Shown: positions 2,093-53,638 of the stretch, piece by piece
Numbering within the stretch: position 1 is the first letter of the stretch
How the letters are laid out: the number at the start of each line of letters is the position of its first letter
From: Mizuhopecten yessoensis
Lineage: Eukaryota
Direction: 5' to 3'
NCBI RefSeq assembly: GCF_002113885.1
Contig: NW_018406690.1
Coordinates: 84,520 to 148,519 of the forward strand
Length of the DNA: 64,000 nt
The notes under the pieces: generated by a model
The model's input: the letters and a program-made list of their open reading frames with translations, nothing else
The model's database searches: none
Told to the model about the DNA's origin: nothing
Made by a program: the position numbers and the translations under genes

Positions 2093-4129
2093 CAGATCAG
2101 ACTGTATGTAGGTAACTACACCTGTTCAGCGAACATTTCCAATGCCTATTTTCTCTAGATAATGGAGGGTTTCATATTGGATGTTCTTTTGCATGATCAT
2201 CAACGGTTCCTGTATGGAGGGGTTCGTATATAATCAGTGATGGTATTGTTATCTTAGCCTCTTGTAAAACGCAATTGTTGCTTCAGATGACCTGATATAA
2301 CTGATCTCGTGCCGACTACTTGTTATCGGAAACCTGTTGGAGAATGATACATTTTGCCATCGTATGTCTTAGTCTGCCATTTATAGTTCAGCGTTGATAT
2401 GTTTTACGACATCGTAGTAAATAACTCTCACAATTACTTTATTTCTGAAAACATAGGTTTCCGGTACAGGCAGATTTTATTTGAACTGCAAAATGTTCAA
2501 TTACGAAATGTTATACCTAATATTGATTACGTTAGTGTGTTATCTGTTGATATAACATATATACTCATTTTGTTTTCTATTTTCCCCGCATTTTTTCCAC
2601 GCCAGTTAATAGATTTTTTTAAAGCCTTTGTCAAAACATTTACTAAAAATTCACATGAATTCACGTGTTAAGATGAGGTTTTTTTTATCATAAGTAGCTT
2701 ATGGTTACAAGCTAACGGAAGGGATTAGCGGTACTATCATCATACATGTATATCATAAGGTTTTTTTTGTTATGTATTTTTGTTGTAGTACTGTTTCAAA
2801 GTGACGTTATCTTTGTTATATGTGGTGATATGTAGGTTCATGTTCCTGTCCTTGTAAATTTAACAAATTCGTTTGGCTGCACCATCATTGTTACAGTACT
2901 TATTTGCTTATGGTACTTATTTTTCTATATACATTCACATATATATTGCAAAATTATATGGTTATATCTTCATAAGATAGTCTTTTAACAGAGACGAGTA
3001 TTACTAATGCGCGAACTCACATCACAAGCATCAGATGACCACAATCAAATATTATGTAATTGTTTATCGATTGACGTAACGTTCCCTACACGTTTACACC
3101 GACTAAACATCATTTTAACCATAACCTACACTTCAAACCCGCCGTTTTGTAATCATTTGAAATGAGGATAAGGCAGGCTACTTTGAACTATTTATGAAGG
3201 GAAACATGAACCTGTGTTATATCCGTATTCATCTGTTCTCTAAAGTAAAATAGAAATGATATGAGAAATGATATTAATTGACAAGAACATGGCGTGTTGG
3301 TTGTTGATATTTATTTGCGTCAGTGCGTCATTCGAGACGAGGGCGAGCTGTTGCCTTTGGTGTCCATGTCAGTCTGCGTGGGTTTGTTAAATAATAGTTC
3401 CTCTTCTGATTGCTGATAGATTGATTTTTTTGATTTTTTTTAACATAATTTGTGCACATAACATTCTACATACAGTGTCAGAAATAACTGGTGTGTGTGT
3501 GTGTTCACATCTCGCCTCCATCTCTTATTTCAACAGACACAAAAGCGCACACCAGGTGGCGCTGTATGAGGTTACACCACCCACATGTCTGATTATCGGA
3601 CGGATGTACTTTAGTGACATGCATTGCAAGTTACAGGGACATAACCTAATCACAACCCTCTCTCTCCATACATGAATGTACTGTATAGGTGACGTTATCT
3701 GTACTAAAGAGGAGGGTACCTGTACTATAGGCGAAGGTACATGTATCCTAGGGGAGGGGACACTCGCCAAAGTAAAAACAAAGAATTGTGTTTCCCTACC
3801 GCAAGGGCAATATCGTTTTTACTAAACTGTGGTTGTTTCACGTTTTCCTAGAGAAGCTCAGAGTAAGAAAAATATGACCAGGGAAACTCGAACGCGTGAG
3901 AAAGACACGATGTTTTATTTCCCCGTCATTTGTTGAGTACAATCCAATCAGACAAACTGTTATTAGTGAGGTATATAATAATGGCAATGGTATCTGCATC
4001 ATAGGTTTAGGTACGTGTGCCATAGGCAGGAGTACCTGTACTATAGGTGAATGTACAGTATTATAGGCAGGGGCATTTATAATATTGGTGAATGTACGGT
4101 AGTATAGGCAAAGGCACATATATACTATA

Positions 4130-4570
4130 TATACTAAAGGTGTAGGTAAATGTTCCATAGTCAAGGCTACCTGTATTGTAGGTGAATGTATACCAAAGGT
4201 GAAGGTAAATGTACCATAGTCAAAGCTACCTGTATTGTAGGTGAATGTATACTAAAGGTGTAGGTAAACGTACCATAGTCAAGGCTACCTGTATTGTAGG
4301 TGAATGTATACCAAAGGTGAACGTAAATGTACCATAGTCAAAGCTACCTGTATTGTAGGTAAATGTATACTAAAGGTGTAGGTAAATGTTCCATAGTAAA
4401 GGCTACCTGTATTGTAGGTGAATGTATATTAAAGGTGTAGGTAAATGTTCCATAGTCAAAGCTACCTGTATTGTAGGTGAATGTATACTAAAGGTGTAGG
4501 GAAATGTTCCATAGTCAAGGCTACCTGTATTGTAGGTGAATGTATACTAAATGTGAAGGTAAATGTTCCG
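4130..4570. repeat. 59-bp minisatellite, ~7.5 copies, with degenerate flanks from ~3680
   Basis: Unit TGTAGGTAAATGTTCCATAGTCAAGGCTACCTGTATTGTAGGTGAATGTATACTAAAGG; the register shifts 1 nt per 60-nt line. Confidence 0.93.
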
Positions 4571-5344
4571 TAGCCGAGTGCACTTGTACTTTTTGGTGAA
4601 GGTTATTTTTACTATAGGACAGGGTGAATGGACCATTGACAAGGACCGGTAACTTATTTAGGGGAGAATACGTGTACAAATCCAGCTCAGTACAGCTTGT
4701 CAATGCCCGCCATCCTGCAGTAGTGTCATTGGGGTAATCTACACAAACTAAGGGAGATTTTGACACTATCTAGACAATCACACCCCATGGCCATTTAAAG
4801 AAGGTCAGACTTCCTTAAATTTCGTTCCTGTCTCTCAGATAAATAAATCAGGGGAAATGTTATTTCAAATGTCTCACTCCGTAATGCCAGCTATTGCCAA
4901 CGGTAGCTTGTAGATATGAAACTGTTTGATAGTTTTATTTCCATGAGTTGCGAGATAATTCTTTTAACGGAAACCTAACCTCTAGCAAAATTCAATCTCA
5001 TTCCTAAAATGTCAAACAACCTACAAACACTGTATGCCTACAACCTGGACTTGAACGGCTTCACCATTACCTATTTCGTTTGTTTTCAGTATCTGTACGA
5101 TCAGACTAAAACAGTATATTTGTCAGATAATTTTAGTATTTATTCAAAAGTATAATGAATAACTTGCAGCATCTTTATGAGAGATGACAATTGACAATTA
5201 AAAAACTGAAACAGCAAACATTATTCTGAAAGAAAAAATACAACAACCAAATCAGTTGAAAACAACTAACTACATATATCAACAAAGGGAAATCAAAATT
5301 ACAAATTTCTTGACAAAATTTTCATCAATACCCAGTCCGGTTTA

Positions 5345-5868
5345 CATAGGATGACACCGGCTTACGACTTTTGGAAAGATTTTTATGTTCCATAACATCG
5401 ATTAATGTATTATGGTAGGTCGTCTTACCATGACATCGGCTAATGACTTTTGAAAGGTTCTTTTGTTCCTTGACATCGGTTAATGTATATAGGTAGGTTT
5501 ATCTTTTACCATAACATCGGCTTATCTATAAAAGTAGGTTTATCTTGTTCCATGACATCGGTTAATGTATAAAAGTAGGTTTTCTCATATCTTGACATCG
5601 GCTAATGTATAAAAGTAGGTTTATCTTGTACCATGACATCGGCTAATGTATAAAAGTAGGTTTATCTTTTACCATGACATCGGCTAATGTATAAAAGTAG
5701 GTTTATCTTGTACCATGACATCGGCTAATCTATAAAAGTAGGTTTATCTTGTACCATGACATCGGCTAATGTATTTAGGTGGGTTTTCTTGTACCATTTC
5801 ATCGGTTCATGTATATAGGTAGGTTTTCTTGTACCATGACACCGGTTCATGTATATTGGTAGGTTTTT
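5345..5868. repeat. 41-bp minisatellite, left part
   Basis: Unit CATGACATCGGCTAATGTATAAAAGTAGGTTTATCTTGTAC; GACATCGG at 5594, 5635 and 5676. Confidence 0.93.
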
Positions 5869-5869
5869 T

Positions 5870-7318
5870 AGGCTAATTAGGGGATAGTACGTTGTTTTGA
5901 GTGGCTATACTGGCGATTAGAACATGAAATTTAAGTTTGAACTCGAGACCGCTAGGTCGAGAGTTTAAACCAAATTTCATGTTCTAATCGCCAGTATAGA
6001 CACGAAAAACAACGTACTATCCCCATTCTAACACACTTGAACAAATATACTACGCTAATATGTTTAGAAACATTGTATTTCCTTGTACAAAAGTACACAG
6101 TAAAATAATTTGTGACCCGAACTGGCGACGTGTCATACTGCAGCGGACCGACCAATCGGAAAGACGCTTTCAAAAGTCGGTCATTTGGCCCCGCCCATAC
6201 TGGCGAGCGCTCGATCTGTATGTTGACGAGGCGGAATATTTGGATTGTTCGTGAACGTCCTGTTACCAAAGTTTATACGACACATTTGGATTAATATTGA
6301 CCAAGTTCTTACATTTCCATGTCAGTATGCATACCAATCTGTGCTTATCGACAAAATCGGTGATTATTTGTATAGATTTGTGAAGAGTTTTGTGTAAATG
6401 CATACGACACATGTGAAATGTTTCATTTGATTTCGGATCTAAGTAGATGTCTTCACACGGATGGAACGAACGTTTCAGTAATAAATGGAGGTAAGAACAA
6501 GGAATGTGTACTTTTTACTTTTTAATTCATTCAACAAATACATTTCATCGGTCGTTTCTGTTCTGTTGCCTACTAGTCTTATCAGCGGGATTTCGCTAAG
6601 AGGCGAGCTTGACGCCATATTGTTTTAGTTTGAAACGGGGCGTGGCTTAAGTGCGATGGGAGGAGCTTAACACGATTGATCATGATTCTATCGCAGATTA
6701 GAACATGGTCCGTATCCAATCAAAACACGCGTTGCAAACGAATCGNATTTCCCCAGATTTGGGACTTCTGAAAACCATGGTTACCACATCAAAAAACACC
6801 AAAATATGCAAAAAATCATGATTTTTAACCCAGAATTTGACCCCCGCAAGTAGAATTGTTTTTCTTAAAACCTGTCTGAAATTAAATATCGCCTACTCGG
6901 TAACAGAAATACTCACGTTTTAGCATAGGTCATTCCGGTGGATTTTTCACAATATTTACACATGTGCTGAGTACAAAAATAGACTACATGAAAAGCTAGC
7001 TTTTGTTGTGTAGACACAGATTCGTAAATGCCCAAAATTGTAGTCTCAAACCAAATTCGACTTTTTTTTTTTTTTTAAATTATGAAGCCCACATAGTCCA
7101 CTTCATCATGTATATGCCAATTTTAGTGCTGATTTTTTTTTTTTTTAATTTTGATACATGTTATATTACAGGGGTTATTCATTGTATAAAAATATCACCC
7201 ATGGCCACCGTACGCTACTGTACTCTGCTACCTTGATCATGATTCTATCGCAGATAAGAACATGGTCCGTATCCAATCAAAACACGCGTTGCAAACGAAT
7301 CGTGTTAGAATGCATGTT
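5870..7318. mobile_element. Hairpin-headed non-autonomous element (Crypton-like) inserted in the 41-bp array
   Basis: Long imperfect palindrome 5880-6024 centred on CGAG-ACC-GCTA-GGT-CGAG. CATTCTAACAC (6024-6034) is inverted at 7302-7312. The satellite resumes at ~7319. Confidence 0.7.
6747..7232. mobile_element. Right end of a probable non-autonomous DNA transposon next to an N
   Basis: Begins after the N at 6746 and ends CTGTACTCTGCTACC|TTGA, followed by a second copy of 6676-6745. The family (Kolobok-like) is a guess. Confidence 0.4.
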
Positions 7319-7715
7319 AGTAGATTTTCTTGTACCATGACATCGGCTAAAGTATATAGGTAGGTTTTCTTGTACCATGACATCTGCTTATGTATATTAG
7401 TATGTTTTCTTGTACCATGATATCGGTTAACATATTTAGAAAGATCGTCTTGTACCATGACATCGGATAATGTTTTAACGTTGGTTTTCTTGTACCTTGA
7501 CATCGGCTAATGTATTTGTGTGATTCTCTTCTGCCATGACATCGGTTAATGTATTTAGGTAAGTCTTTTTGTACTTCGCAAAAGGTAGGTTTTCTTTTAC
7601 CAAGACATCGGCTAATGCATTTGGGTTGGTTTTCTTGATTAGGTAGGTCCTATTGTACATTGACGTCGGCTAATGTATTTGGGAAAGTCTTCTTTTACCA
7701 TGTCATCGATTTCAT
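7319..7715. repeat. 41-bp minisatellite, right part
   Basis: Same CTTGTACCATGACATCGG unit as 5345-5868. Confidence 0.9.
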
Positions 7716-8131
7716 GTTTTGTTACAATGAAGTGAATAGGCTATGTTGCTACTGAGTGAAGGAGATGTTACATGAGTCAGTGTTATACATCAGTGTAAAC
7801 GAGCTTTATTGAAACAACATCCATAGTCGATACTGATGCAAATATGATAATTAAATCAATCAACTTGGTTCGATTTTTAGATGAATTAGTTTAACGGTAT
7901 CTAAAATTCCAATTTGAAAACGACTTTCTATCATAAGATTTTTGAAAATAATATTTGCATTAAGGGCGAAATGTAAACAATAGGTATACATAGCAGTTAA
8001 TATTTGAAGTAGTAGTATGCGCCAAATGGGCCACTTCCAGGGAGATATTTGAGTGTTGTTTGGATTTCAAATACATTTAGCATCAATTAGCTTTACCTAG
8101 CTACAACAACTGAAAGTGTGCTGTGTATTTA

Positions 8132-8461
8132 GGAGGCACGGTAATCTAGTGATAGGACGCTGGGCTCGTGACCGAAGGGTTGCGGGTTCGAGTCACGACA
8201 CGGCACTGTGTTGTACTTTTGAGCAAGATACTTTACTCCGCTTGTTCCCTTCTACTCAGCTGTAAATGAGTACGTGGTTGGGCAGTGCTAGAATTGTAGA
8301 ATAATAGATGTGAGCGCCGAAATGGCAACACCGGCTGTATGCTCCCTAGGGAGTTGGGAAAGGTATTGGCTGGTTGCAAAGGCCAAAGGATAATAATTTG
8401 TGAACCGCTTTGAAACGATCTACGAACGAGGTTGTGTTAAATCGGTATACTTATTATTATT
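8132..8461 (+). mobile_element. tRNA-derived SINE, CORE-type
   Basis: tRNA-like head with B box GGTTCGAGTC, CORE-like body (TTGAGCAAGATACTTTAC...CAGCTGTAAATGAGTAC) and (TTA)n tail. Confidence 0.8.
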
Positions 8462-8782
8462 TTCTTTTTAATTTGCTATAAACGTTGTACAAAGTGTTTT
8501 ATAATGAACATTTTGAAAATCTCATGACCCCTGTTGACTCGCTTTTGTCTCCGATTGACTGGTTAAACATATGAGATAACGCTGTCGTGAATTGAAGACT
8601 AATTCAATATTCCCTGTATGAAGTAAATTAACCCTGCCTGTATACAGTGTGCTGAGTGGCTAAACTCGTTTTTATAAATAATCTTGTTTTTAATTTCTAA
8701 TTTCTTAAGTATCCCAATCCCACTGCACTCTGGTTTCTCTATATATAGTAACAGTAACCCCATTTACCTCCGTTTGTAGAAC

Positions 8783-8907
8783 TGTAAAACAGTTTGGCCG
8801 TACACTTCCGTTGATAGCTCAAGCGGGTATAGTGATAGTTTAGAAGTCTGAAGTTCGGGGTTCGAATCTAGGCCTAGCTCCGCTGTGTCTTTTTAACACC
8901 CAGAACA
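8783..8907 (+). repeat. Short tRNA-like dispersed repeat
   Basis: A-box-like TAGCTCAAGCGG and B box GGTTCGAATC; ends CAGAACA; similar to 19915-20041. Confidence 0.6.
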
Positions 8908-9699
8908 CTGTTGTTAATTATAAATTTGTATAGTTCATCTTTATATTATATATAGTTTCCAATACTTAGTGACAGTTTTGGGCAGTGGTACGTGGATCCT
9001 CCAAGCAAAGTATCAGGACAAGCACGTTTGCGGTCTCGCTCTAGACTGAAATCAAAGTGTTCGTATTAGCGAAGTTCTGCTCTAGACTAAAATCGACGTT
9101 TCAAGATTATCAAGTTGCGTTTTAGGTTTTTTAGGATTTTTTGAGGATTCCATGCAAAAATGCAACATTAATATTTTTTAGAAAAGTTGGTTTGAACAAA
9201 CAAGGACGATGATACACCATGGGATTCATAGCGACTAAGAGACACCTAAATCCTGCCTCCGTGTTAAAATGACATCAATTCACGTGTCGTCTGTCGCAGC
9301 TTCCACGACAGAGACTCGAGTTGATGGCGAACGTAGCTATCGAACGAAATGAAAAGCGTGTAGCATGGGGTATAATTATGTGAACAATTGAAAACGCGCT
9401 GTAATGGACAGGCCACACTTTGTGGTTTTCTTTGCTGTGCCAATCTAGCCGCCGAGGTGACAAACATTCCAAGTCATTTATTTAATTGGATCTGTGTTTC
9501 TGGTTTGATTACATCTGGCTATGTGTTTGAGGTATGCGGTAAGTGTGTGCAGGCCACGCTCCCTGTCTATACAGAAATATAAATCACTTCTCTGCTGTGA
9601 ACCGACCTTGTTTACGTCAGTATATAACGATGTCTAGCTATTTGAACAATATCTGCTAGAGGTGAAAGTTGCTCACATTTTGAGCTTGTCATTTCAGGA

Positions 9700-10755
9700 T
9701 TTTACTCTGTGACAAATATCTATTGTCGTTTACTGCTGATCATTCTCGTCCCTGTTTCCTCTGGCAATTACGTCACCATTCTCTCTTGTTGTTTCGTCAC
9801 AAATTCCTTTTGCTGTTTTGTCACTATTTCCTACTGTGTCATCGCAATTTCCTATTGTTGCTTTGTCACCATTTCCCCTTTATTTGTTTCGCAACATAAT
9901 CCAATTGTTGTTTTCTTACTACATCCTTTTGTTGTTTCGTCACAATTTTCTCTTTTTGATCCGTCAGAAATTCTTGTTGTTATGTCACCATTACCTCTTG
10001 TTTCGTCACATTTTCTATTGTTGTTTTGTCACCATTTCCTCTTGTTTTGTCACTAATTCCTATCGCTGTTTTGTCACCATTTCCTCTTGTTTCGTCACAT
10101 TTTCTATCGCTGTTTTGTCACCATTTCCTCTTGTTTCGTCACATTTTCAATCGCTGTTTTGTCACCATTTCCTCTTGTTTCGTCACATTTTCTATCGCTG
10201 TTTTGTCACCATTTCCTCTTGTTTCGTCACTAACTCCTATCGCTGTTTTGCCATCTTTTCCTCTTGTTTCGTCACTAATTCCTATCGCTGTTTTGTCATC
10301 ATTTCCTCTTGTTTCGTCACTAATTCCTATCGCTGTTTTGTCACCATTTCCTCTTGTTTCGTCACATTTTCTATTGTTGTTTTGTCACCATTTCCTCTTG
10401 CAATGTCGTCACTAATTCCTATCGCTGTTTTGTTACCATTTCCTTGCATAGTTTCGTCAAAAATTCCATTTTGTTTTGTCACCATTTCGACGTGTGTCGT
10501 CATACATTTATTGCTGTTTTGCCATCTTTTCCTCTTGTTTCATCACAGTATTTTCTTCCTGGTTTTACGTCACTGTGTTCTCTTGTTATTTTCGTCAATA
10601 TGTACGTTTCGTCACCATTCCCTCGTGTAACTGCCAATACTTGCTTTGTCGTAATTATTCCTTTTGTTGTTTCGTGATTGTTCATTCTTGCTGTTCCTCG
10701 CCATTTCTTGTCGTTGGTTTCGTTTCGGAATTGTTTCCTCTTTTTGTTTCGCCTG
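9700..10755. repeat. 22/44-bp pyrimidine-rich minisatellite with degenerate edges
   Basis: TTTTGTCACCATTTCCTCTTGTTTCGTCACATTTTCTATCGCTG, period 44 (10081 to 10125). It explains the overlapping ORFs at 9709-10895. Confidence 0.92.
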
Positions 10756-10875
10756 TAGTTCTAGTTCGCCTGAAGCAAAGTCTCAGTTCATCTATTGCAA
10801 ATGGCTTGTGTCCGTCGTTGTCCGTCTTGCATCGGCCGTCGTGCGTCCGTAAGAAAATAACATGCATAAGCACTA

Positions 10876-11547
10876 ACGTAATTGTACCCAAATAGGGACA
10901 CTTTTTAGATAAATATCAATGTTCTTTACCATGATATCATTTTTAAAAGTCTATTTTATCAAAACTTATGCCAGTTTGAAGAATTTTACTATCAGCTCTC
11001 AAAATGTTTGTTCATTTTTCATAATTAGATACTATCCACTTTTCATTTCTATCACAATTTGATATTTCGGGCGCGTTGTTCTATAAAAAGAACGCGAAAT
11101 ACCATCAGAGTTACGTAGGCCCTTGAACCGGCGTTACTGTACCCTGGAAGGGACACTTCCGGTATTTTGGCAAATACTTGGAGATAAATTATTAATATCG
11201 GCAGAAAATATGCATAGTTGAAATATTTTAAAGTCAACGAGGATTCTGATTAAATTTCCTCTTCAAACTAGCATGAGTTTTGATAAAATAGACTTTTCAA
11301 AATGATCTCCAAATAAATAGCGTCGCACGTGCCGGCACATAAAGCAGGAAAGTCTTGTTCTGGTAATTATTCTTACCTTTAAAATTGTCCATTTAATGAT
11401 AATCAGCAGCCAATAAAATTAAATACATTTTAATTGTCATGAAAAGTATTATCAAATTAAAAACATATTCATAAAAGTACGTCTTTGTATTGAATGACAG
11501 TTTCTTGGGCCGTTATGGGTACTGTCCCGATTTGGGTACAGTGACGG
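10876..11547. mobile_element. MITE (Tc1/mariner-pogo type) nested in the HINE
   Basis: TIRs ACGTAATTGTACCCAAATAGGGACA / TGTCCCGATTTGGGTACAGTGACGG, flanked by TA. A second internal inverted pair lies at ~10932-10980 and ~11261-11308. Confidence 0.75.
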
Positions 11548-12139
11548 TAAACATATTTCAAAAACAAATGTAGGAAAGTTCCATGGTCATAGACAAACCA
11601 AAACTGTGAATTATATGGATTTAACTACCCAGGGGTCTGAGTGACGGGCCAAAATGTGCTTGTTAAAAAAGCCTAGTTTACTATAGGTGATAACAGAGAG
11701 TTTACAATTTTGGGTATATTTTGCTTCTTTTCTGTGTGATATAATTCAAACTTGGTTGGAATTGTCAATATGTGATTGCAGTTTGATGGTACGAAAATAA
11801 AGACCCTGACTCACCCTCAGGGGCGGCGGGGTGGGGGCAAAGGGGTTCAAATTGGCTTAAATTTCAACAATGTTCTTCCTTAGACCGAGACATGCTAGAA
11901 TCGAATCCTCTTCTTGGAAAGGTCCTATAGTGCTTAATCAAAGTATGAATTTAACAAGCTCCGGTCCATCCATTCCTTTCCGGGGAGGGGGTAAATTTTA
12001 CTTTTTATTTCATTCCTTCATATCAGAGATCGAGAAAAGAATACACCTGCTGTTACCCACTGCAAGAGTATCGTAAGAGGTGACTAATGCGGAAATCGCT
12101 ACAGAATTTGGGATTTGCTTTTGTGTCCTCTTCTTTGGG

Positions 12140-12236
12140 CACACATACACACACGCAAGCACACATACACACACGCAAGCAAACATACACACACGCAAGC
12201 ACACATACACACACGCAAGCACACATACACACACAT
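12140..12236. repeat. 20-bp CA-rich repeat
   Basis: ACACATACACACACGCAAGC, ~5 copies. Confidence 0.9.
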
Positions 12237-12797
12237 GGAGACGCGTCCTCAAATGACGTTTGTTGCTGACAGGGCGTTAAACAAATTCAAACCAAACCGA
12301 ATGTAATGTTAGTTAATTTTCCCTTTGATAACATCACAACAATACCATCTCAAGTGTCCGTTAATGCCCGTCGACCTCTTGTTCTCGCTGTTTCGTTTCG
12401 TGGACATATGAATACGTGGATGAAGAGTGTCCACGGTATCAACGGAAACAAAAAAAACTCATGAAAATTATGGCTATCACAGTAATTACTGTTCATCAGG
12501 TATCAGCCACCATGAAGAATACTGCAATCATCAATGTACCAATCGTTAGAACTGGCATACATTTAATGACTTAAACCAGACTACATTCATACAAGGTAGA
12601 AAAGTATTTCAACTTTTAAGAACGGTACCATTCCCTCGCCTCACTGATTATATTTTTCTCTTCTGCTGTTTCATTTACAATTTCATGTTCGTAGCAAAAC
12701 CCTTTCTCTCTACCATACCCTATTTAATAATTCATTTGAAAACATGTCAATATCGCATATTTTTGGTTAACACTTTATCTTAATTCATTTCAGAAAT

Positions 12798-13328
12798 ATG
12801 ATGGACTTTACGAGTAACCTGCGCCTGCGCATACGGACAAATAATCACACAATGGAGGCAGTCGTAGAATCCATTCGAAAAAGTGATTCGGATGACATCG
12901 GAGCTCTTTATTATGTTGTGGCCGTTGTTTTTATCTACGGGTTTTCCATTGTTATGATGATTGCGTCACATATTCGTAAAAATAAACAGGACAACCAGCT
13001 TCGTGTCTATCTCAAGGAAATGGCGTTGCTGAGGAAAAACGACAGGAGGGAAAAATTGGTAGGCACACTTTCAAGTTTCACCACAAAGACCAATATTTTC
13101 GCGGAGGAGTTTGAGAAAAAGAAAATACCAAAACTGATTGAGGGAGTGAATGAGGAAAGACAAGATTTACTTTTTTGTGCAAACAGTACTAGTGATGACA
13201 CGAATGATTCCGGATTGCAGCTTAATTACGATGAAGATGTAGAATCTCCTCCTAAAACATGTGAAAGCCAAAATTCAAAGCAGAGTTCTGTCCTAGTTCA
13301 CGTGATAAACGAACAGACGTCATTGTGA
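12798..13328 (+). CDS. Single-pass membrane protein, KCNE/MinK-like (176 aa); probably the terminal or only coding exon
   Basis: Non-repetitive intact ORF. Acceptor TTAATTCATTTCAG at 12793, 4 nt before the ATG. N16-H-T sequon. One TM segment ALYYVVAVVFIYGFSIVMMIA followed by basic SHIRKNK and RVYL, then an acidic/Ser-rich tail. Coding status is well supported; the family is less certain. Confidence 0.85.
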   Translation: MMDFTSNLRLRIRTNNHTMEAVVESIRKSDSDDIGALYYVVAVVFIYGFSIVMMIASHIRKNKQDNQLRVYLKEMALLRKNDRREKLVGTLSSFTTKTNIFAEEFEKKKIPKLIEGVNEERQDLLFCANSTSDDTNDSGLQLNYDEDVESPPKTCESQNSKQSSVLVHVINEQTSL

Positions 13329-14519
13329 TTACGTCATGCATGTTCATGTACGTGCTCGTTAATTCATTCAAACTGAGTCATATTGACCTACGAGAAGCAT
13401 TATATCATAGAATACTATCATCGAATTCCATTACAGTGTTTTAATTTAGGTTGTTTATGAAATTCTTTAATTTTTATATACATTTAAAAAGGTCAACTAG
13501 GTTGAATCCCGTTTAAACCGCTTTATCTAAATTTTGCATTCGTGAACAGCAATAGAACTAAGTTAACCGTTTATATTAAGAATATCAACTATTTCCGTCG
13601 GCTAATCGACAGGATTCGATATCATTACATGAAAATCTTCGTATTATGGTACGCAATTAGGTTTTTATTTCTGTAGACATGCCTAAACATAGTTTTAATG
13701 ATATAAGTTTGGAATTGCAATCAAAGTTGATAAATATTCGACAAGTGTAAACATAGTTCGTGGAATGATATTGAGCGCATTTTAGCTTTATGTCCGTATG
13801 TCTAGTTTTGGCTTCAGAGGAAATGGCGGTATGAAGCTTAAGGTTTACACAAAGTTTGATGGCGGGCTATATGACAGAAAATCAAAGTCCAGAAACACCA
13901 ACATTCAGTGCATTGGTAAAAAAAAACTTGCCTTCATCTGCTCTTGATTATCTGCACAATATTTGTAACAATGAATTACTAAAATGCGATGGTAAGTTTT
14001 GATAACTGTTAAATCAATTTTTTTTCGTGGGGCCCAATGTTTGTGATTTACCAAAAAAAGACACCATTTCGTTGGTACATTAACTTGTGTATATTCAGTA
14101 CCCACGCAAAACATACAAGGTGTAAAGAGATTTCAACTTTTAAAGACACTCTTTCCTTTATTCTTTGAGAACACAGGGCATATGGAGTTAGCTCCAACAC
14201 AACAAACTATATATAATTGTCATCATCACATGTAATGGGAGACAGCTGATGTAAATGTATATATTTGATGTAACAGTTACCTATACTATACTGTTGTATA
14301 TTTACTACGATTGGTATAATAATAATTAAATTGATAAAAACACAGATAAGCGTGGACTGTGACCTTATAAGCTAATGGATGACGTCGCTGTGAGCTTACA
14401 AGCTAATGGTGAGATGGTGCTACATTTAGCTCAGAGAAACGCTTCTCATATAAATATATGTGACAGTGTGGTGAAATATTATGTCAAAATGTATGTGGTA
14501 GTTAGAACCGTTAACGCAC

Positions 14520-15360
14520 TTTAGCTCACCTGGCCCGAAGGGCCATATAAGCGTATGCCGTACTGGGGCGTCCGGCGTCCGGCGTCCGGCGTCCGTCGTC
14601 CGTCCGTCAACTTTTTCTTTTGAACGACTTCTCCTGAAGGACATAGCGTCATTTTACATTTGACCAGTAGGTATATGGGATGGAGTGCTATAAAGTTTCC
14701 TCATTAAAACGACCTTGACCTACTTTCAAGGTCACAGGGGTAAGATATGTTAAAAAATGCAAACAACAATATTTAAAGTACAATTAGAACTAGAGTCATG
14801 ATACTTCGATATGCTATGAAGACCAGCAGTGCGAATCTTTTTCTTTATTGTCGTAATAAGGGCAAAGGTCAACATTGAAGTGCTAGCCGGGGTCAATATA
14901 GGTAAAAACCTTTAACAATATTCTTCTCAAGTTCCATAAGGCACAGGGACATGATATTAGGCCAGTAGGTACCTGGGATGGAGTGCTATACACGTTTCTC
15001 ATTAAAATGACCTTGACCTAATTTCAAGGTCACATGGGTCAAATATGTTCAAAATTGCAAACAATAATATCCTAAGAACCATTTGGGCTAGAGTAATGAT
15101 ACTTGGGTATGCTATGCAGACCAGCAGAGCAAATATTTTTTTCGATTACAGTAATGAGGTCAAAGGTCAACTTCAAGTGCTAGCCGAAGTCGAAGTTCAA
15201 CGTGGGTCAAATTTCAAACGACAATATCTTAAGAACCGTTTAAGTGATGTTAAAATGTTTTGTTTGCTAGTTACCAAATTTGGTCTGAAGTTACCTATAT
15301 GTCAGTTTCATGTAACAAAAGAAACAGATGAGCGATACAGGCCCTCTGCGCCTCTTGTTT
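14520..15360 (+). mobile_element. HINE with two internal ~298-bp repeats
   Basis: TTTAGCTCACCTG-GCCCGAAGGGC head and (GCGTCCG)n; internal repeats at ~14664 and ~14961; 3' CAGATGAGCGATACAGGCCCTCTGCGCCTCTTGTT. Confidence 0.88.
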
Positions 15361-15589
15361 AATAACAAGATTAAAAACTAAATGACACGAACAAATACAT
15401 CCCACTCACAGGTACCCATCGTTTTGAATGCCTAGACAATCCTATAGCAGCAGTGTATATAGTAGCTGATAGGCTTTCAGGAAGACATAAGAATACCAGA
15501 CAAAGATCTTAATTTTGTTGTCATTATCTAATGTCTAATATAAAATAACATAGTGTAATTAAAAATATACTGTATTAGTTGAAATGATA

Positions 15590-25610: not shown

Positions 25611-28600
25611 AAGATTCAAGATTTTTTTATTACGCTCTGACACACAAAGTGTGTAACAAGAGGTCAAACAAAATAACATCAATCAAAATAAAACATGACA
25701 GAGAGAGTAGATTACGCATGGACAGATTAAGCATTATTTCATAGACAGATTCAGCATTATTTCTTAGACAGATTCAGCAATATTTCATAGACAGATTCAG
25801 CAATATTTAATAGATAGATTCAGCAATATTTCATAGATAGATTCAGCAATATTTCATAGATAGATTCAGCATTTTCATAGATTCAGTAATATTTCATAGA
25901 TAGATTCAGTAATATTTCATAGATAGATTCAGCAATATTTCACATTGTTTGATGTACATATGTATCAGATGTATTGTTACAAAGTAACAGTAAGGTTATA
26001 CATGAACAGATTCAACATTATTTTCTTACATGTGAAACAGTAAGTTTACACATAATTATTTCATACATGTGAAACAGTAAGATTACACATCCTCATTTCA
26101 TACATGTGAAACAGTAGTATTATACAAGGACAGATTTAGCATTATTTCACACATGTAGATTACATGTGAACAGATTCAGCATTAGTTCACACGAGTGAGA
26201 GTAGATTACACATGAACAGATTCCGCATTAGTTCATGCATGTGACACAGAAGAATATATATGACCAGATTTATCAGCATTAGTCATATATGTATTGGATA
26301 CTCAATTTTCACAGCAAATTATCTTCACTGCCATAATCATAATGCAAAGTATAGTATTTTTGACATACTGATTTATTTCAATTGTTATTTTTTTATAATT
26401 ATTTGCAGTTTTACAAGAAATGTAATAACCCTTTTGATTAATCGTTTATTACATATTGTGAACATTCCTTTCATTTTATCAACATTTGGATTGGTGTAAT
26501 AATATTTTGGAATAAATGTTTCCCTAATCTGGCGTATGGATTCTTGTTGACATTTAAACAAATAATGAAATTCATCTCCTGTTTCATTTCTATTACACAA
26601 AGTACATTCTCTTTCCTCTCGAGGAATTCCCATCCAACGGCCAGTTTCCAGGGGCAGCGGAAAGTTTGACGAGCGAAATTTGCAAAACACAACACGATCC
26701 CTCTTGTTTAATTGAGTTAAGTAATTTTCAAAACCAAAATTAGATTTAAATAATAGATAATTTTGTCCTCTACTACTTTTTTTCGATATCGGCATACCAC
26801 TTTCGAATAAACTGGTCATTAAGCTTTTGTGTTATAACATGTTTAAGTTTTTGTCGTTCTAGAGTAGTCACTTTTTGAGATGTCCAGATATATGTCAACC
26901 CTAGATCATTTAGTGTAGTTTTGATAAAATTTAGCCACTTCGAGTGAAATGCGCCCGTTTCGTGCATTGCATGTATAATATTATATAACTGACTCGATAC
27001 TTTACCATTTTCTGTTATTAGTTTGTACCAAAATAAAATCATTCTATTTTAATAGTATTTTCTAAAGGAAAACGTCCCGATTCTCCATATACCATATAAT
27101 TAGGCGTAGATTTCCTTGAATTGAGAACTTTTTTATAAATTTCAAATGTATCGTTTCCAAGAGGGTAATATTTTCGAATCCCCATATCTCTGACGCGTAT
27201 AACAGTATAGGCAATATTAATGTATCAAAAAGTTCAAACTGTAGGTCTACTGGTAAATTGATATTTCTGATTTTCCTATATAAAGCAAATAATGCTTTCT
27301 GGGCTTGTTCAGCTAGTTTCTTTTTCGCCTTACCAAAGTTCCCAGTATAGTTAAACAATAACCCAAGGTACGAATAAGAATCTATAATTTCAATTTCCTC
27401 TCCGCAAAGCATAAATGTACTATTGATTTTCGATTTTCGTTTGAAAAGACAACTATTTTAGCATTTGTATTAACATGTAATTTCCATATTTTACAATAAT
27501 CGCCGAAGACATCTAAAGCTTTCTGTAGACCCTCGGGCGATTCTGCCAGTACAACAGTGTCATCCGCATATAACAAAATAAACAATTTTAGGTACATTCC
27601 AATACAATTTTGACTAAGATTATCAATATCTTTGAGACATTTTACCTCATTTTTAGACAGGAACTCCTCTAGATCATTCAAGTAGATCGAAAATAAAAAT
27701 GGCGATAAATTTTCCCCTTGTTTTAAACCGATATTGCTCGTGAAGAACTGAGTCTGCTCGTTTCCATTTTTTACACATGACTTAGTATCAGTATATAAGT
27801 TATAGATTACATTTAGTATTTTGCCATTGATATTGCTTCTCAGCATTTTTTCCCAAAGTCCAACCCTCCACACTGTATCAAAGGCTTTTTTAAAGTCAAT
27901 GAATGAACAATATAACTTTTTATTATAGGAGAAATACATTGATATTAGTGTTTGCATTACAAATATATTTTCTGTAGTAGAATAACCTTTCCTAAAGCCA
28001 GCTTGGCTTCCATGAATAAGATTTATTTGATCAGATAATTGATTCAATCTATCATTTAGTATAGATGTAAAAAGTTTTCCCAAACACGATACTAAAGTTA
28101 TTGCTCTATAGTTGTCAAGGTCATTAATGTCGCCCTTGTTTTTGTATATTGGTTTAATTAGCCCCACAGTCCATGACTTAGGTATTATACCAGTATCTAA
28201 TATTGTATTAAATAATTTGACATATATATTTATAAAAGGCTCTAAAGAATATTTTATATGTTCATTCAGGATCTCATCGTTTCCACATGCTTTATTATTA
28301 CTAAGATGTTTAACAGATTTCCTTATCTCTGTCTCAGTTATTGGACCATTTAAAACATGGTCATACATATTTTCATCTAATGAAGGTAACTGAAATTCTT
28401 CCACATCACTGTTATCAGTATTAAGATTTTTTAAATAATTGAAAATTTTATCTATTTTTTAATCTACTTTGATATTTTTCCTCGTACAATCTATTTTGTT
28501 CAAGATATCCCAAAACTTTTTAGGATCACTTTTTGAGGTTTTTCTTATTTCTCCCTCCATTTTTTCTTGGAAGTTTATATAACATTTTTTCATAGTATTA

Positions 28601-49607: not shown

Positions 49608-52600
49608 AGCCAAGGTCACAGTATACGTAACAGCAGATCCCATTGTGTTACCTCTGAGGCCAAGGTCACAGTATACAGCAGATCCCATTGTGAAACCTCT
49701 AAGGCAAAGGTCACAGTATACGTAACGGCAGATCCCACTATGTCAGATCCCATTGTGTTACCTCTGAGGCCAAGGTCACAGTATACAGCAGATCCCATTG
49801 TGACACCTCTGAGGCAAAGGTCACAGTATACGTAACGCCAGATCCCATTGTGAAACCTCTGAGGCCAAGGTTACAGTATACATCAGATCCAATTGTGAAA
49901 CCTCTGACGCCAAGGTCACCGTATACGTAACCGCAGATCCCATTGTGAGACCTCTGAGGCAAAGGTCACAGAATACATCAGATCCCATTGTGAAACCTCT
50001 GAGGCCAAGGTTACAGTATACAGCAGATCCCATTGTGAAACCTCTGAGGCCAAGGTTACAGTATACAGCAGATCCAATTGTGAAACCTCTGACGCCAAGG
50101 TCACAGTATACGTAACCGCAGATCCCATTGTGAAACCTCTGAGGCAAAGGTCACAGTATACGTAACCGCAGATCCCATCCCATTGTGTAACCTCTGAGGC
50201 CAAGGTCACAGTATACGTAACGGCAGATCTCATTGTGAAACCTCTGAGGCCAAGGTCATAGTATACAGTAGATCCCATTGTGTAACCTCTGAGGCCAAGG
50301 TCACCAGATCCCATTGTGTAACCTCTGAGGCCAAGGTCAGAGTATACAGCAGATCCCATTGTGAAACCTATGAGGCCAAGGTCACAGAATACGTAACGGC
50401 AGATCTCATTGTGAAACCTCTGAGGCAAAGGCCAGCAGATCCCATTGTGAAACCTCTGAGGCCAGGGTCACAGTATACAGCAGATCCCATTGTGAATCCT
50501 CTGAGGCAAAGGCCACAGTATACGTAACGGTAGATCCCATTGTGAAACCTCTGAGGCCAAGGTCGCAGTATACGTAACGGCAGATCCCATTGTGAAGCCT
50601 CTGAGGCAAAGGCCACAGTATACGTAACGGTAGATCCCATTGTGAAACCTCTGAGGCCAAGGTCACAGTAAACGTAACGGCAGATCCCATTGTGAAACCT
50701 CTGAGGCTAAGGTGACAGTATACAGCAGATCCCATTGTGAAACCTCGGAGGCCAAGGTCACAGTAAACGTAACGGCAGATCCCATTGTGAAACCTCAGAG
50801 GCCAAGGTCACAGTATACGTAACGGCAGATCTCATTGTGTTAACTCTGAGGCCAAGGTCACAACCTCTGAGGCCAAGGTCACAGTATACAGAAGATCCCA
50901 TTGTGAAACCTCTGAGGCCAAGGTCACAGTATCCAGCAGATCCCATTGTGAAACCTCTGAGGCTAAGGTGACAGTATACAGCAGATCCCATTGTGAAACC
51001 TCGGAGGCCAAGATCACAGTATACGTAACGGCAGATCCCATTGCGAAACCTCTGCGGCAAAGGCCACAGTATACGTAACCGCAGATCCCATTGTGAAACC
51101 TCTGAGGCCAGGGTCACAGTATACAGCAGATCCCATTGTGAATCCTCTGAGGCAAAGGTCACAGTATACAGCAGAACCCATTGTGAAACCTCTGAGGCTA
51201 AGGTCACAGTATACAGCAGATCCCATTGTGAACCCTCTGAGGCCAAGATCACAGTATACGTAACGGCAGATCCCATTATGAAACCTCTGAGGCCAAGGTC
51301 ACAGTATCCAGCAGATCCCATTGTGAAACCTCTGAGGCCAGGGTCATAGTATACAGCAGATCCCATTGTGAAACCTATGAGGCCAAGGTCACAGGATACG
51401 TAACGGCAGATCCCATTGTGTAACCTCTGAGGCAAAGGCCACAGTATACGTAACGGTAGATCCCATTGTGAAACCTCTGAGGCCAAGGGCACAGTATACA
51501 GCAGATCCCATTGTGAAAACTCTGAGGCCAAGGTTACAGTATACAGCAGATCCAATTGTGAAACCTCTGAGGCAAAGGTCACAGTATACGGCAGATCCCA
51601 TTGTGAAACCTCTGAGGCTAAGGTGACAGTATACAGCAGATCCCATTGTGAAACCTATGAGGCCAAGGTCACAGGATACGTAACGGCAGATCCCATTGTG
51701 AAACCTCTGAGGCAAAGGCCACAGTATACGTAACCGCAGATCCCATTGTGAAACCTCTGAGGCCAAGGTCACAGTATACAGCAGATCCCATTGTGAATCC
51801 TCTGAGGCCAAGATCACAGTATACGTAACGGCAGATCTTATTGTGTTAACTCTGAGGCCAAGGTCACAGTATACAGAAGATCCCATTGTGAAACCTCTGA
51901 GGCAAAGGTCACAGTATACGTAACGGCAGATCTCATTGTGTTAACTCTGAGGCCAAGGTCACAGTATACGTAACGGCAGATCCCATTGTGTTAACTCTGA
52001 GGCCAAGGTCACAGATTACGTAACGGCAGATCCCATTATGTAACCTCTGAGGCCAAGGTCACAGTATACGTAACGGCAGATCTCATTGTGTTAACTCTGA
52101 GGCCAAGGTCACAGTATACGTAAAGGCAGATGCCAATGTGTTAACTCTGAGGCCAAGGTCACAGTATACGTAACGGCAGATCCCATTATGTAACCTCTGA
52201 GGCCAAGGTCACAGTATACGTAACCGCAGATCCCATTGTGTAACCTCTGAGGCCAAAATCACAGTATACAGCAGATCCAATTGTGAAACCTCTGAGGCAA
52301 AGGTCACAGTATACAGCAGATCCCATTGTGAAACCTCTGAGGCTAAGGTCACAGTATACAGCAGATCCCATTGTGAAACCTATGAGGCCAAGGTCACAGT
52401 ATACGTAACGGCAGATCTCATTGTGAAACCTCTGAGGCAAAGGCCACAGTATACGTAACGGTAGATCCCATTGTGAAACCTCTGAGGCCAAGGTCACAGT
52501 ATACAGCAGATCCCATTGTGAAACCTCTGAGGCTAAGGTCACAGTATACAGCAGATCCCATTGTAGCAGATCCCATTGTGAAACCTCTGAGGCCAAGGCC

Positions 52601-53638
52601 ACAGTATACGTAACGGCAGATCTCATTGTGCAACCTCTGAGGCAAAGGCCACAGTATACGTAACGGTAGATCCCCTTGTGAAACCTCTGAGGCCAAGGTC
52701 ACAGTATCCGTAACGGCAGATCCCATTGTGAAACCTCTGAGGCCAAGATCACAGTATACAGCAGATCCAATTGTGAAACCTCTGAGGCCAAGGTCACAGT
52801 ATACGTAACGGCAGATCCCATTGTGAAACCTCTGAGGCCAAGATTACAGTATACAGCAGATCCAATTGTGAAACCTCTGAGGCCAAGGTCATAGTATACA
52901 GCAGATCCCATTGTGAAACCTCTGAGGCCAAGGTCATAGTATACAGCAGATCCCATTGTGAAACCTCTGAGGCCAAGATTACAGTATACAGCAGATCCAA
53001 TTGTGAAACCTCTGAGGCCAAGGTCATAGTATACAGCAGATCCCATTGTGTAACCTCTGAGGCCAAGGTCATAGTATACGTAACGGCAGATCCCATTGTG
53101 AAACCTCTGAGGCAAAGGTCACAGTATACGTAACGGCAGATCTCATTGTGAAACCTCTGAGGCCAAGGTCATAGTATACGTAACGGCAGATCTCATTGTG
53201 AAACCTCTGACGCCAAGGTCACAGTATACGTAACGGCAGATCCCAATATGAAACCTCTGAGGCCAAGGTCACAGTATATGTAACGGCAGATCCCATTGTG
53301 AAACCTCTGAGGCAAAGGTCACAGTATACGTAACGGTAGATCTCATTGTGTTAACTCTGAGGCCAAGGTCACAGTATACGTAACGGTAGTATACAGCAGA
53401 TCCCATTGTGTAACCTCTGAGGCCAAGGTCATAGTATACAGCAGATCCCATTGTGAAACCTCTGAGGCCCCGATCACAGTATACAGCAGATCCAATTGTG
53501 AAACCTCTGAGACCAAGGTCACAGTATACGTAACGGCAGATCCCATTATGAAACCTCTGAGGCCAAGATCACAGTATATGTAACGGCAGATCCCATTGTG
53601 AAACCTCTGAGGCCAAGGTCACAGTATACGTAACGGCA
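49608..53638. repeat. ~4-kb minisatellite of mixed 45- and 50-bp units (~85 copies)
   Basis: CAGATCCCATTGTGAAACCTCTGAGGCCAAGGTCACAGTATAC followed by AG or GTAACGG; periods of 45 (49981 to 50026) and 50 (50101 to 50151). Confidence 0.97.

Follow-up and report, generated by a model that had tools for sequence, protein, structure and literature searches.

A divergent KCNE-like candidate in the scallop Mizuhopecten yessoensis and its probable connection to vertebrate KCNE through an intermediate invertebrate family

An open reading frame (ORF) in the genome of the scallop Mizuhopecten yessoensis raises the question of whether potassium channel subunits of the KCNE type are found outside the vertebrates. 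The ORF lies at 12798..13328 (+) of a stretch of 64,000 nucleotides, here called the window (NCBI RefSeq assembly GCF_002113885.1, contig NW_018406690.1, positions 84,520 to 148,519 of the forward strand), and runs from an ATG through 176 codons to a stop. An original prediction, made from the letters of the window alone, held it to encode an invertebrate KCNE/MinK-like beta subunit with a single transmembrane (TM) helix. The reading that we find reasonably likely is that the window protein represents a diverged invertebrate offshoot of a superfamily of KCNE-like proteins and is a probable channel auxiliary subunit. The proposed kinship stood when it was traced through a second invertebrate family, whereas direct comparison of the protein with KCNE gave negative or weak results.

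A word-index search with the ORF rendered 86 relatives in scallops, other bivalves, gastropods, cephalopods and the annelid Dimorphilus, all of them unnamed proteins. Orthologues in other scallops are 85-93% identical to the window protein, and those in other bivalves, gastropods and cephalopods 39-54%. The conserved core of the family (alignment A2, 59 sequences), used as the profile in an exhaustive search, gave 556 representative clusters at an expectation value (E) of 1e-3 or lower, 258 of them at E<=1e-10, and the named members further include Aplysia, the annelid Owenia and the nemertean Tubulanus. Most representatives are without a name, and the phyla listed here (molluscs, annelids and a nemertean) are those of the named members. 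Judged by these matches, the ORF belongs to an unnamed and strongly conserved mollusc, annelid and nemertean family, referred to as type A. The query in our own searches was the ORF, which lies in the second exon of its gene. The longer NCBI model of the protein (P0001, 191 amino acids) was used only as one row of the full-length type A alignment A1, in the member-wise Pfam scan, the PDB profile search and the structure prediction.

Membership of KCNE was judged by the curated gathering cut-off of the Pfam family ISK_Channel (PF02060), which is 22.1 bits. When the scallop genome was searched with the type A profile, four further single-ORF loci were found (L003-L006). One of these, L003, was matched genome-wide by A2 at E 2.2e-9 and is annotated as 'hypothetical protein KP79_PYT08188' (P0221, 150 amino acids). 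Its top Pfam match is ISK_Channel, with 19.7 bits over profile positions 10-89 of 126, and within its subfamily ISK_Channel is found in five of seven members and each other Pfam family once or twice. A search with the superfamily alignment A5, a mixed profile in which 51 of 61 rows are of type A, retrieved the family referred to as type B. The named members of type B come from Patella, Batillaria and Owenia, and its core consists of D-A-L-[LF]-Y-I, F-Y-A-x-S, K-Y-I-R-R-E and Y-Y-x-E-F-V, in that order.

Pfam-positive invertebrate proteins are already visible in databases, including several type B proteins that bear a precomputed PF02060 label; type A is not flagged. In a rescan of ten type B proteins ISK_Channel was the top match in nine, and seven passed the cut-off with 22.6-30.5 bits:

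P0263, ISK_Channel, 30.5 bits
P0266, ISK_Channel, 25.2 bits
P0268, ISK_Channel, 25.1 bits
P0270, ISK_Channel, 24.9 bits
P0259, ISK_Channel, 24.7 bits
P0250 (Batillaria), ISK_Channel, 24.1 bits
P0231, ISK_Channel, 22.6 bits

Among 26 type B members PF02060 is the sole Pfam family at E<=1.3e-4, where it is matched by eight. The type B profile (A6) was also compared with 177,635 distinct PDB sequences and gave seven matches at E<=10, all of them to KCNE3 or KCNE1. With the mixed profile A5, KCNE2 came first (E 0.02) and KCNE1 and KCNE3 were found as well, in alignments running from before the helix to after it. Seven matches out of seven to KCNE, from two paralogues, do not look like noise. Homology of type B to vertebrate KCNE is strongly indicated by these profile matches.

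The highest KCNE scores are obtained with the subgroup of P0270, which has the pattern N-A-W-M-Y-I-L ... K-R-[DE]-W-Y-[KR]-D-K. The part after the TM helix in this subgroup recalls D-A-W-Q-E-K-D-K of KCNE1. P0270 is encoded as a single exon (L007 4001-4531; JBFTWQ010002567.1, GCA_041192925.1) on a gene-dense contig.

The step from type A to type B was examined by aligning a profile built from type A only (A2) with one built from type B only (A6) in hhalign. The two profiles align with 97.0% probability, E 8.7e-11 and a score of 62.9, over 49 gapless columns that cover residues 27-75 of the window protein at 31% identity. Composition-preserving controls stayed far lower: reversed profiles scored 20.9 and 20.6 at most, 60 global column shuffles 20.6, and 60 shuffles in which TM columns and post-TM columns were each kept in their own block 24.6 (probability 19%). 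Detection on the scale of whole genomes is reciprocal, with A2 finding a type B gene at E 2.2e-9 and A6 finding the window gene at E 6.7e-6. On this evidence types A and B are very probably homologous, and the superfamily that they form is quite likely homologous to vertebrate KCNE. The profile searches did not converge on an unrelated single-pass family; they converge on KCNE, and do so through the intermediate only.

Several observations weigh against the KCNE-like reading, and most of them come from direct comparison. ISK_Channel matches the window protein over residues 12-65 with 13.4 bits (E 0.067), and since this is below the curated score of 22.1 the protein is not filed as a Pfam KCNE member. 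Six unrelated Pfam families match it at similar E-values. None of 87 type A members matches PF02060 at E<=0.01, and 15 of the 87 match LMBR1. No KCNE chain was found at E<=10 when the PDB was searched with A2, the best matches being the fourth TM helix of CD9 and NDUFB11 (ESSS), and the matches of A1 and A2 together are to TBP, SPC25, CD9 and NDUFB11. Searched in six frames with PF02060, the scallop genome yielded only an unrelated 16-bit stretch with a stop codon in it, and the window locus was missed. Taken singly, none of the scallop paralogues reaches the Pfam cut-off: the best are L003 with 19.7 bits and L009 with 15.2 bits, and the others have no ISK_Channel match. The links at the KCNE end have their own weak points, as each of the seven PDB matches of the type B profile is marginal when taken singly (E 0.09-0.77) and, with A5, the score of NDUFB11 over the TM helix alone is similar to that of KCNE. 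The latter marks the noise floor, and the PDB matches are therefore taken as supportive and not as decisive. Short TM proteins may also converge, as exemplified by SERTM2, which resembles KCNE and is read by its authors as convergent.

The LMBR1 matches were judged to be compositional and were rejected, because they cover a TM helix and a charged-coil stretch of a protein with nine TM helices. Among 85 more distant type A members PF02060 is the joint commonest weak match (seven at E<=0.1, best E 0.012). The sole positive direct lead is a feature search in the ESM Atlas, which places the ORF beside chordate KCNE4 (0.94, 210 of 256 features shared) and beside a mollusc cluster in which 25% of the members have PF02060. 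By the profile scores type A does not qualify as KCNE by itself, and from the direct tests alone the KCNE1 alignment offered in the original prediction is indistinguishable from chance similarity between TM helices.

These observations would be accounted for together if type A were an independent single-pass family that came to resemble KCNE by convergence, in its short glycosylated ectodomain, TM helix and basic stop-transfer cluster, and served another partner, such as a channel, a transporter or a receptor. All direct KCNE tests of the window family are sub-threshold or negative, the similarity of the TM helix to NDUFB11 and CD9 scores equally high, and SERTM2 provides a precedent for a KCNE look-alike. 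In addition, the predicted beta-hairpin, the near-invariant TM helix and the C-termini resembling PDZ ligands are, to our knowledge, not KCNE traits. Convergence does not explain equally well why the chain from type A to type B and from type B to KCNE stands at each step, with controls, or why the aligned stretch reaches past the TM helix on both sides. Nor does it account for PF02060 being the sole recurrent Pfam family and for the retrieval of all three KCNE paralogues in the PDB. We consider convergence unlikely, and the KCNE-like reading is followed below.

The anatomy of the window protein can be described as follows, with all features on the forward strand:

12798..12902 (+), predicted extracellular N-terminus, amino acids 1-35 (from hydropathy, charge and AlphaFold2, where the predicted local distance difference test score, pLDDT, is about 55-65)
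12843..12851 (+), N-glycosylation sequon N16-H17-T18, at the turn of a predicted hairpin
12903..12971 (+), predicted TM helix, amino acids 36-58, near-invariant in the family (from conservation, AlphaFold2 and alignment register)
12972..13100 (+), basic juxtamembrane cluster I59-R-K-N-K63 and predicted cytoplasmic helix, amino acids 64-101 (from conservation and AlphaFold2)
13101..13325 (+), predicted cytoplasmic tail, amino acids 102-176, poorly conserved and predicted to be disordered (from pLDDT below 50 and consensus)

The architecture was read correctly in the original prediction with respect to the lack of a signal peptide, the N-H-T sequon, the single TM helix and the basic cluster that follows it. 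The N-terminus is hydrophilic, with a highest Kyte-Doolittle mean over 19 residues of -0.22 (windows that begin at residues 1-12 and together span the first 30), and a signal peptide is therefore not expected. The sole TM peak reaches 2.34 in the window starting at residue 37. Counted over 15 residues on either side of the helix, the net charge is -2 before and +4 after, and the N-terminus is therefore predicted to be outside. By prediction, then, the protein is a small membrane glycoprotein and shares with KCNE a single-pass, N-out topology without a cleavable signal peptide.

Conservation is concentrated around the membrane. The N16 column holds N-x-[ST] in 83 of 85 sequences of A1, 56 of 58 of A2 and 82 of 85 of A3, or about 97% of the relatives, and N16 itself is conserved in at least 90% of the sequences, as is the acidic patch (D-S-D-D) that precedes the helix. 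In a mollusc-centred set the helix residues Y39, V40, V43, Y47, S50, M54, I55 and S57 are invariant. In S57-H-I-R-K-N-K63, directly after the helix, neither S57 nor I59 varies and R60 is kept in at least 90% of the sequences; this stretch corresponds to the basic cluster of KCNE ([SG]-Y-[ITM]-[RK]-S-[KR]). Beyond the helix I59, D65 and Y71 are invariant, and a long and well conserved segment rich in R, K and E follows. At the end of the tail a conserved [IV]-x-[VI]-I-N-E block is found together with Q-T-S-L (13314-13325), a sequence that looks like a class I PDZ ligand. AlphaFold2, run with the family alignment, gives a low-confidence beta-hairpin (8-14/19-25) with N16 at its turn, a confident TM helix at 31-60 (pLDDT reaching 93), a second helix at 64-101 separated from the first by a break at 61-63, and a disordered tail, the mean pLDDT being 57. 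A Foldseek search of the PDB with this model gave no match below E 4, as expected for a helix-only model with such a mean pLDDT. So little variation in the helix would suit an obligate contact, helix to helix, with a partner conserved to the same degree.

The gapless TM register against KCNE1 that was part of the original prediction was reproduced by chained profile alignments. These place A36-L37 and Y39 opposite A-L-Y of KCNE1 and S57-H-I-R opposite S-Y-I-R, so that the basic cluster aligns to S-Y-I-R-S-K-K. The pairing proposed after the helix, of LRVYL with FNVYI, was not borne out, because the profiles put Y71 opposite P77/F78 of KCNE1 and not opposite Y81. KCNE1-3 share the motif D-P-[FY]-x-x-Y-I after the TM helix; type A has its invariant D65 and Y71 at a different spacing and without the proline. 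Within the helix S50-I51-V52 falls opposite T-V-G of KCNE3 and F-T-L of KCNE1, a triplet that is reported to set modulation specificity (PMC2234029).

With this anatomy, two other identities can be weighed: a regulator of P-type pumps like FXYD, or a relative of the complex I subunit ESSS/NDUFB11. In many type A members Y-D-D precedes the helix, and an invariant serine lies close to the cytoplasmic end of the helix. This arrangement recalls the FXYD layout of an acidic patch, glycine and serine in the TM helix and a basic cluster. No FXYD family match was found for the window protein at E<=10, however, nor is FXYD among the commonest families listed for the type A members. As regards ESSS, NDUFB11 chains are among the best PDB matches of the type A and mixed profiles, and the Pfam family ESSS is matched by two of the 85 distant type A members (E 0.014). 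The NDUFB11 similarity is nevertheless confined to the TM helix (profile positions 27-62 or 45-62), and NDUFB11 is absent from the matches of the type B profile. Furthermore, the conserved sequon and the charge pattern favour an N-out protein of the secretory pathway and not a mitochondrial one. Both identities were rejected on the missing FXYD profile match and the TM-only likeness to NDUFB11, and we regard them as very improbable. The reading as a KCNE-like subunit is retained.

The gene was outlined as follows:

2181..2221 (+), coding part of the upstream exon in the NCBI model, with an in-frame ATG, 13 codons and 2 bases
2222..12793 (+), intron of about 10.6 kilobases (kb), GT...AG, with donor GT at 2222 and acceptor AG at 12792-12793
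12794..14616 (+), second exon, with the entire conserved coding sequence and about 1.3 kb of 3' untranslated region (from transcriptome contigs; 3' end approximate)
12798..13328 (+), coding sequence, 176 amino acids and stop, equal to residues 16-191 of LOC110452482 (P0001)

The ORF is identical (100%) to residues 16-191 of LOC110452482 of M. yessoensis (P0001), which is annotated as an 'uncharacterized protein'. In a six-frame match the first 14 residues of P0001 map to 2181. The upstream coding piece ends in GG at 2221, the canonical donor GT follows at 2222, and the piece joins the acceptor in frame; the acceptor cag is at 12791-12793 and the ORF begins 4 bases downstream. The upstream piece contributes 15 residues that are absent from the models of Pecten, Ylistrum and Argopecten. 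The orthologues in these three scallops are modelled with 176-177 amino acids and start at the methionine of MMDF, and the conserved protein is therefore the ORF of exon 2. Comparison of the models suggests that 2181-2221 is probably a 5' leader with the upstream ATG in it. The NCBI start at the upstream ATG is likely an annotation choice and not the true start.

Expression was assessed with contigs from four small public runs of four different studies, whose label as RNA is a guess, placed on 11000-15500. Contig matches start at 12792/12793 in all four runs, with 22-144 letters at the 5' end that do not match the intron, and no contig from the four runs covers the intron bins at 12359-12660. 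One contig of 1846 letters covers 12792-14616 and gives the extent of the 3' untranslated region. The pattern is as expected from spliced mRNA and unlike that of genomic DNA. The acceptor that the original prediction placed before a complete single-exon ORF is thereby confirmed at the predicted base. A coding sequence contained in one exon is a general KCNE trait, and the conserved ORF lies wholly within exon 2.

The 3' end of exon 2 is approximate because repeats follow it. In 14473-15378 the summed contig depth is in the thousands with many internal joints, resembling a dispersed and highly represented repeat past the 3' untranslated region, and this pile-up blurs the end of the gene.

That the ORF is a genuine scallop gene is virtually certain. 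The notion of a chance ORF or a non-coding transcript, for which only its short length and the lack of a named domain could be cited, has a negligible probability and is already refuted by conservation: 85-93% identity in other scallops, conservation over three named phyla, 556 representative clusters and invariant residues, besides spliced transcripts in four studies.

KCNE-like loci in the scallop number at least eight, including the window gene, and all of them are uninterrupted ORFs. Those outside the window are:

L003, contig C3918, type A profile at E 2.2e-9, ISK_Channel 19.7 bits
L004, contig C5409, from the type A profile search
L005, G000:C3363:23226-23432 (L005 1405-1800), forward strand (+), type A profile at E 1.4e-5 and type B profile at E 1e-6
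L006, contig C628, from the type A profile search
L009, contig C5443, type B profile at E 5e-30, ISK_Channel 15.2 bits
L010 and L011, both on contig C2066, about 165 kb apart, from the type B profile, possibly a linked pair

Their labels as 'uncharacterized' are due to all of them being below the Pfam cut-off. L005 is located about 74 kb upstream of the window gene and shares its contig and strand; the L005 ORF of 131 amino acids has N-x-[ST] sequons, one TM helix and a Q-I-R-K-Q-K cluster. The C-termini of the scallop paralogues are E-T-S-V, E-T-I-V, E-T-D-V and V-T-N-V, compared with Q-T-S-L in the window protein, and 14 of the 26 type B proteins in A6 end in [ST]-x-[VLI], mostly E-T-x-V. 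We know of no such PDZ-ligand-like C-termini as a trait of vertebrate KCNE. Their recurrence here suggests scaffolded localisation.

The genome also has at least three loci of KCNQ_channel (PF03520) above the cut-off, on C4556, C5479 and C4030. The scallop thus possesses the canonical class of partner, which shows opportunity only and not interaction. Whether the window protein acts as an auxiliary subunit of a potassium channel is argued from analogy with KCNE, and the balance tilts slightly in favour. The same analogy underlies the modulation of KCNQ/ERG channels put forward in the original prediction, as well as any particular channel partner and any effect on gating. The near-invariant TM helix would pack into a groove of a voltage-gated potassium (Kv) channel, at the interface between the voltage sensor and the pore of the tetramer; in 6V01 the helix of KCNE3 sits in the cleft next to S1 and the adjacent pore domain. 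KCNQ would be the obvious candidate, and another Kv channel or a different partner is conceivable. The juxtamembrane helix might then contact cytoplasmic gating regions or calmodulin-binding regions, and such contact could alter voltage dependence, kinetics or surface expression, tuning gating or trafficking.

Other features of the window are mostly repeats. The intron contains a tandem repeat of 44/89 base pairs at 9933-10547 (about 13 or 7 copies) and, shortly before the acceptor, a TG/CA-rich tract at 12010-12270 with spurious H-T-H-T and C-V-C-V ORFs on both strands. The assembly has a single N at 6746. At 27382-28404 (-) an ORF of 340 amino acids matches RVT_1 with 118 bits (E 6e-34) and is therefore taken as a retrotransposon fragment; the neighbouring ORF at 26385-26819 (-), of 144 amino acids, has no Pfam match. 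A 4-kb satellite at 49609-53638 is made up of 82.5 copies of a 50-base-pair unit with 79% matches, and can also be read with a period of 95. It coincides with a GC-rich block (0.45-0.49) and gives rise to the long, repetitive minus-strand ORFs.

In the current literature invertebrates have yielded no canonical KCNE gene; the expansion of the family is placed in jawed vertebrates, and KCNE0 of the lamprey is described as its earliest characterised and early-diverging member (eLife 2026). Ciona is reported to have KCNQ1 and to lack KCNE. Our full-text searches of the literature turned up no publication about KCNE-like genes of molluscs or annelids. This agrees with the original view of the family as little described, as do its relatives, all of which are unnamed. 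We lean, by a narrow degree, towards types A and B being the protostome counterparts of KCNE. If so, subunits of the KCNE type would predate the split of protostomes and deuterostomes instead of being born in vertebrates, and this mode of channel regulation would have originated much deeper in animals. They would also have diversified independently in lophotrochozoans, with at least eight loci in the scallop, and the near-invariant helix of type A would mark an ancient and obligate pairing with one particular channel. Several hundred 'uncharacterized' proteins would receive a name. Natural, highly diverged pairs of subunit and channel could be used to ask which features of the interface make KCNE compatible with KCNQ, a question left open in eLife 2026. 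Because the type A helix is so exceptionally conserved, it lends itself to structure prediction with candidate partners and to electrophysiology in oocytes.

Among known systems the closest comparison is with vertebrate KCNE1-6 and lamprey KCNE0 (PF02060), auxiliary subunits of KCNQ1 and other Kv channels. Like the window protein, these are N-out single-pass proteins without a signal peptide and have a conserved sequon about 20 residues before the helix. The TM helices of KCNE1 and KCNE3 share with that of the window protein a start of A-L-Y, a hydroxyl at the position of the gating triplet and an exit of [YH]-I-R followed by basic residues. A helix-break-helix arrangement, a single coding exon and organisation as a multigene family are common to both families. 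The differences are that the window protein reaches 13.4 bits where 22.1 are needed and is linked to KCNE transitively through type B, that it has a low-confidence predicted beta-hairpin at the N-terminus, and that the C-terminus in its family often resembles a PDZ ligand. The TM helix of type A is also far more conserved than that of KCNE, being near-invariant across three named phyla, and the helix after it (Q-L-R-x-Y-L-K-E-M...R-R-E) is unlike D-P-[FY]-x-x-Y-I.

SERTM2 and SERTM1 are type I single-pass micropeptides with a sequon and resemble KCNE, and SERTM2 is reported to bind the potassium channel TASK1. They differ from the window protein in that the latter has no match to Pfam SRTM1, a family that appears lower in the ESM Atlas list (0.83). 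MPS-1 to MPS-4 of Caenorhabditis elegans are nematode-specific and 'sometimes described as' KCNE-like (eLife 2026). Like the window protein they are single-pass invertebrate proteins for which a role as MiRP/KCNE-like Kv auxiliary subunits has been proposed, and they are set beside it by description only; a nematode cluster is found in the ESM Atlas list at 0.92.

The nearest relatives of type A are the type B proteins, such as KP79_PYT08188 (P0221) of the scallop, BaRGS_00013711 (P0250) of Batillaria, SNE40_004630 (P0244) of Patella and P0258 of Owenia. The two types have the same architecture and single-exon genes, and they coexist in the same genomes. Type B is distinguished by K-Y-I-R-R-E and Y-Y-x-E-F-V after the helix and mostly by an E-T-x-V end, and, in contrast to type A, it passes or nearly passes the Pfam cut-off for KCNE.

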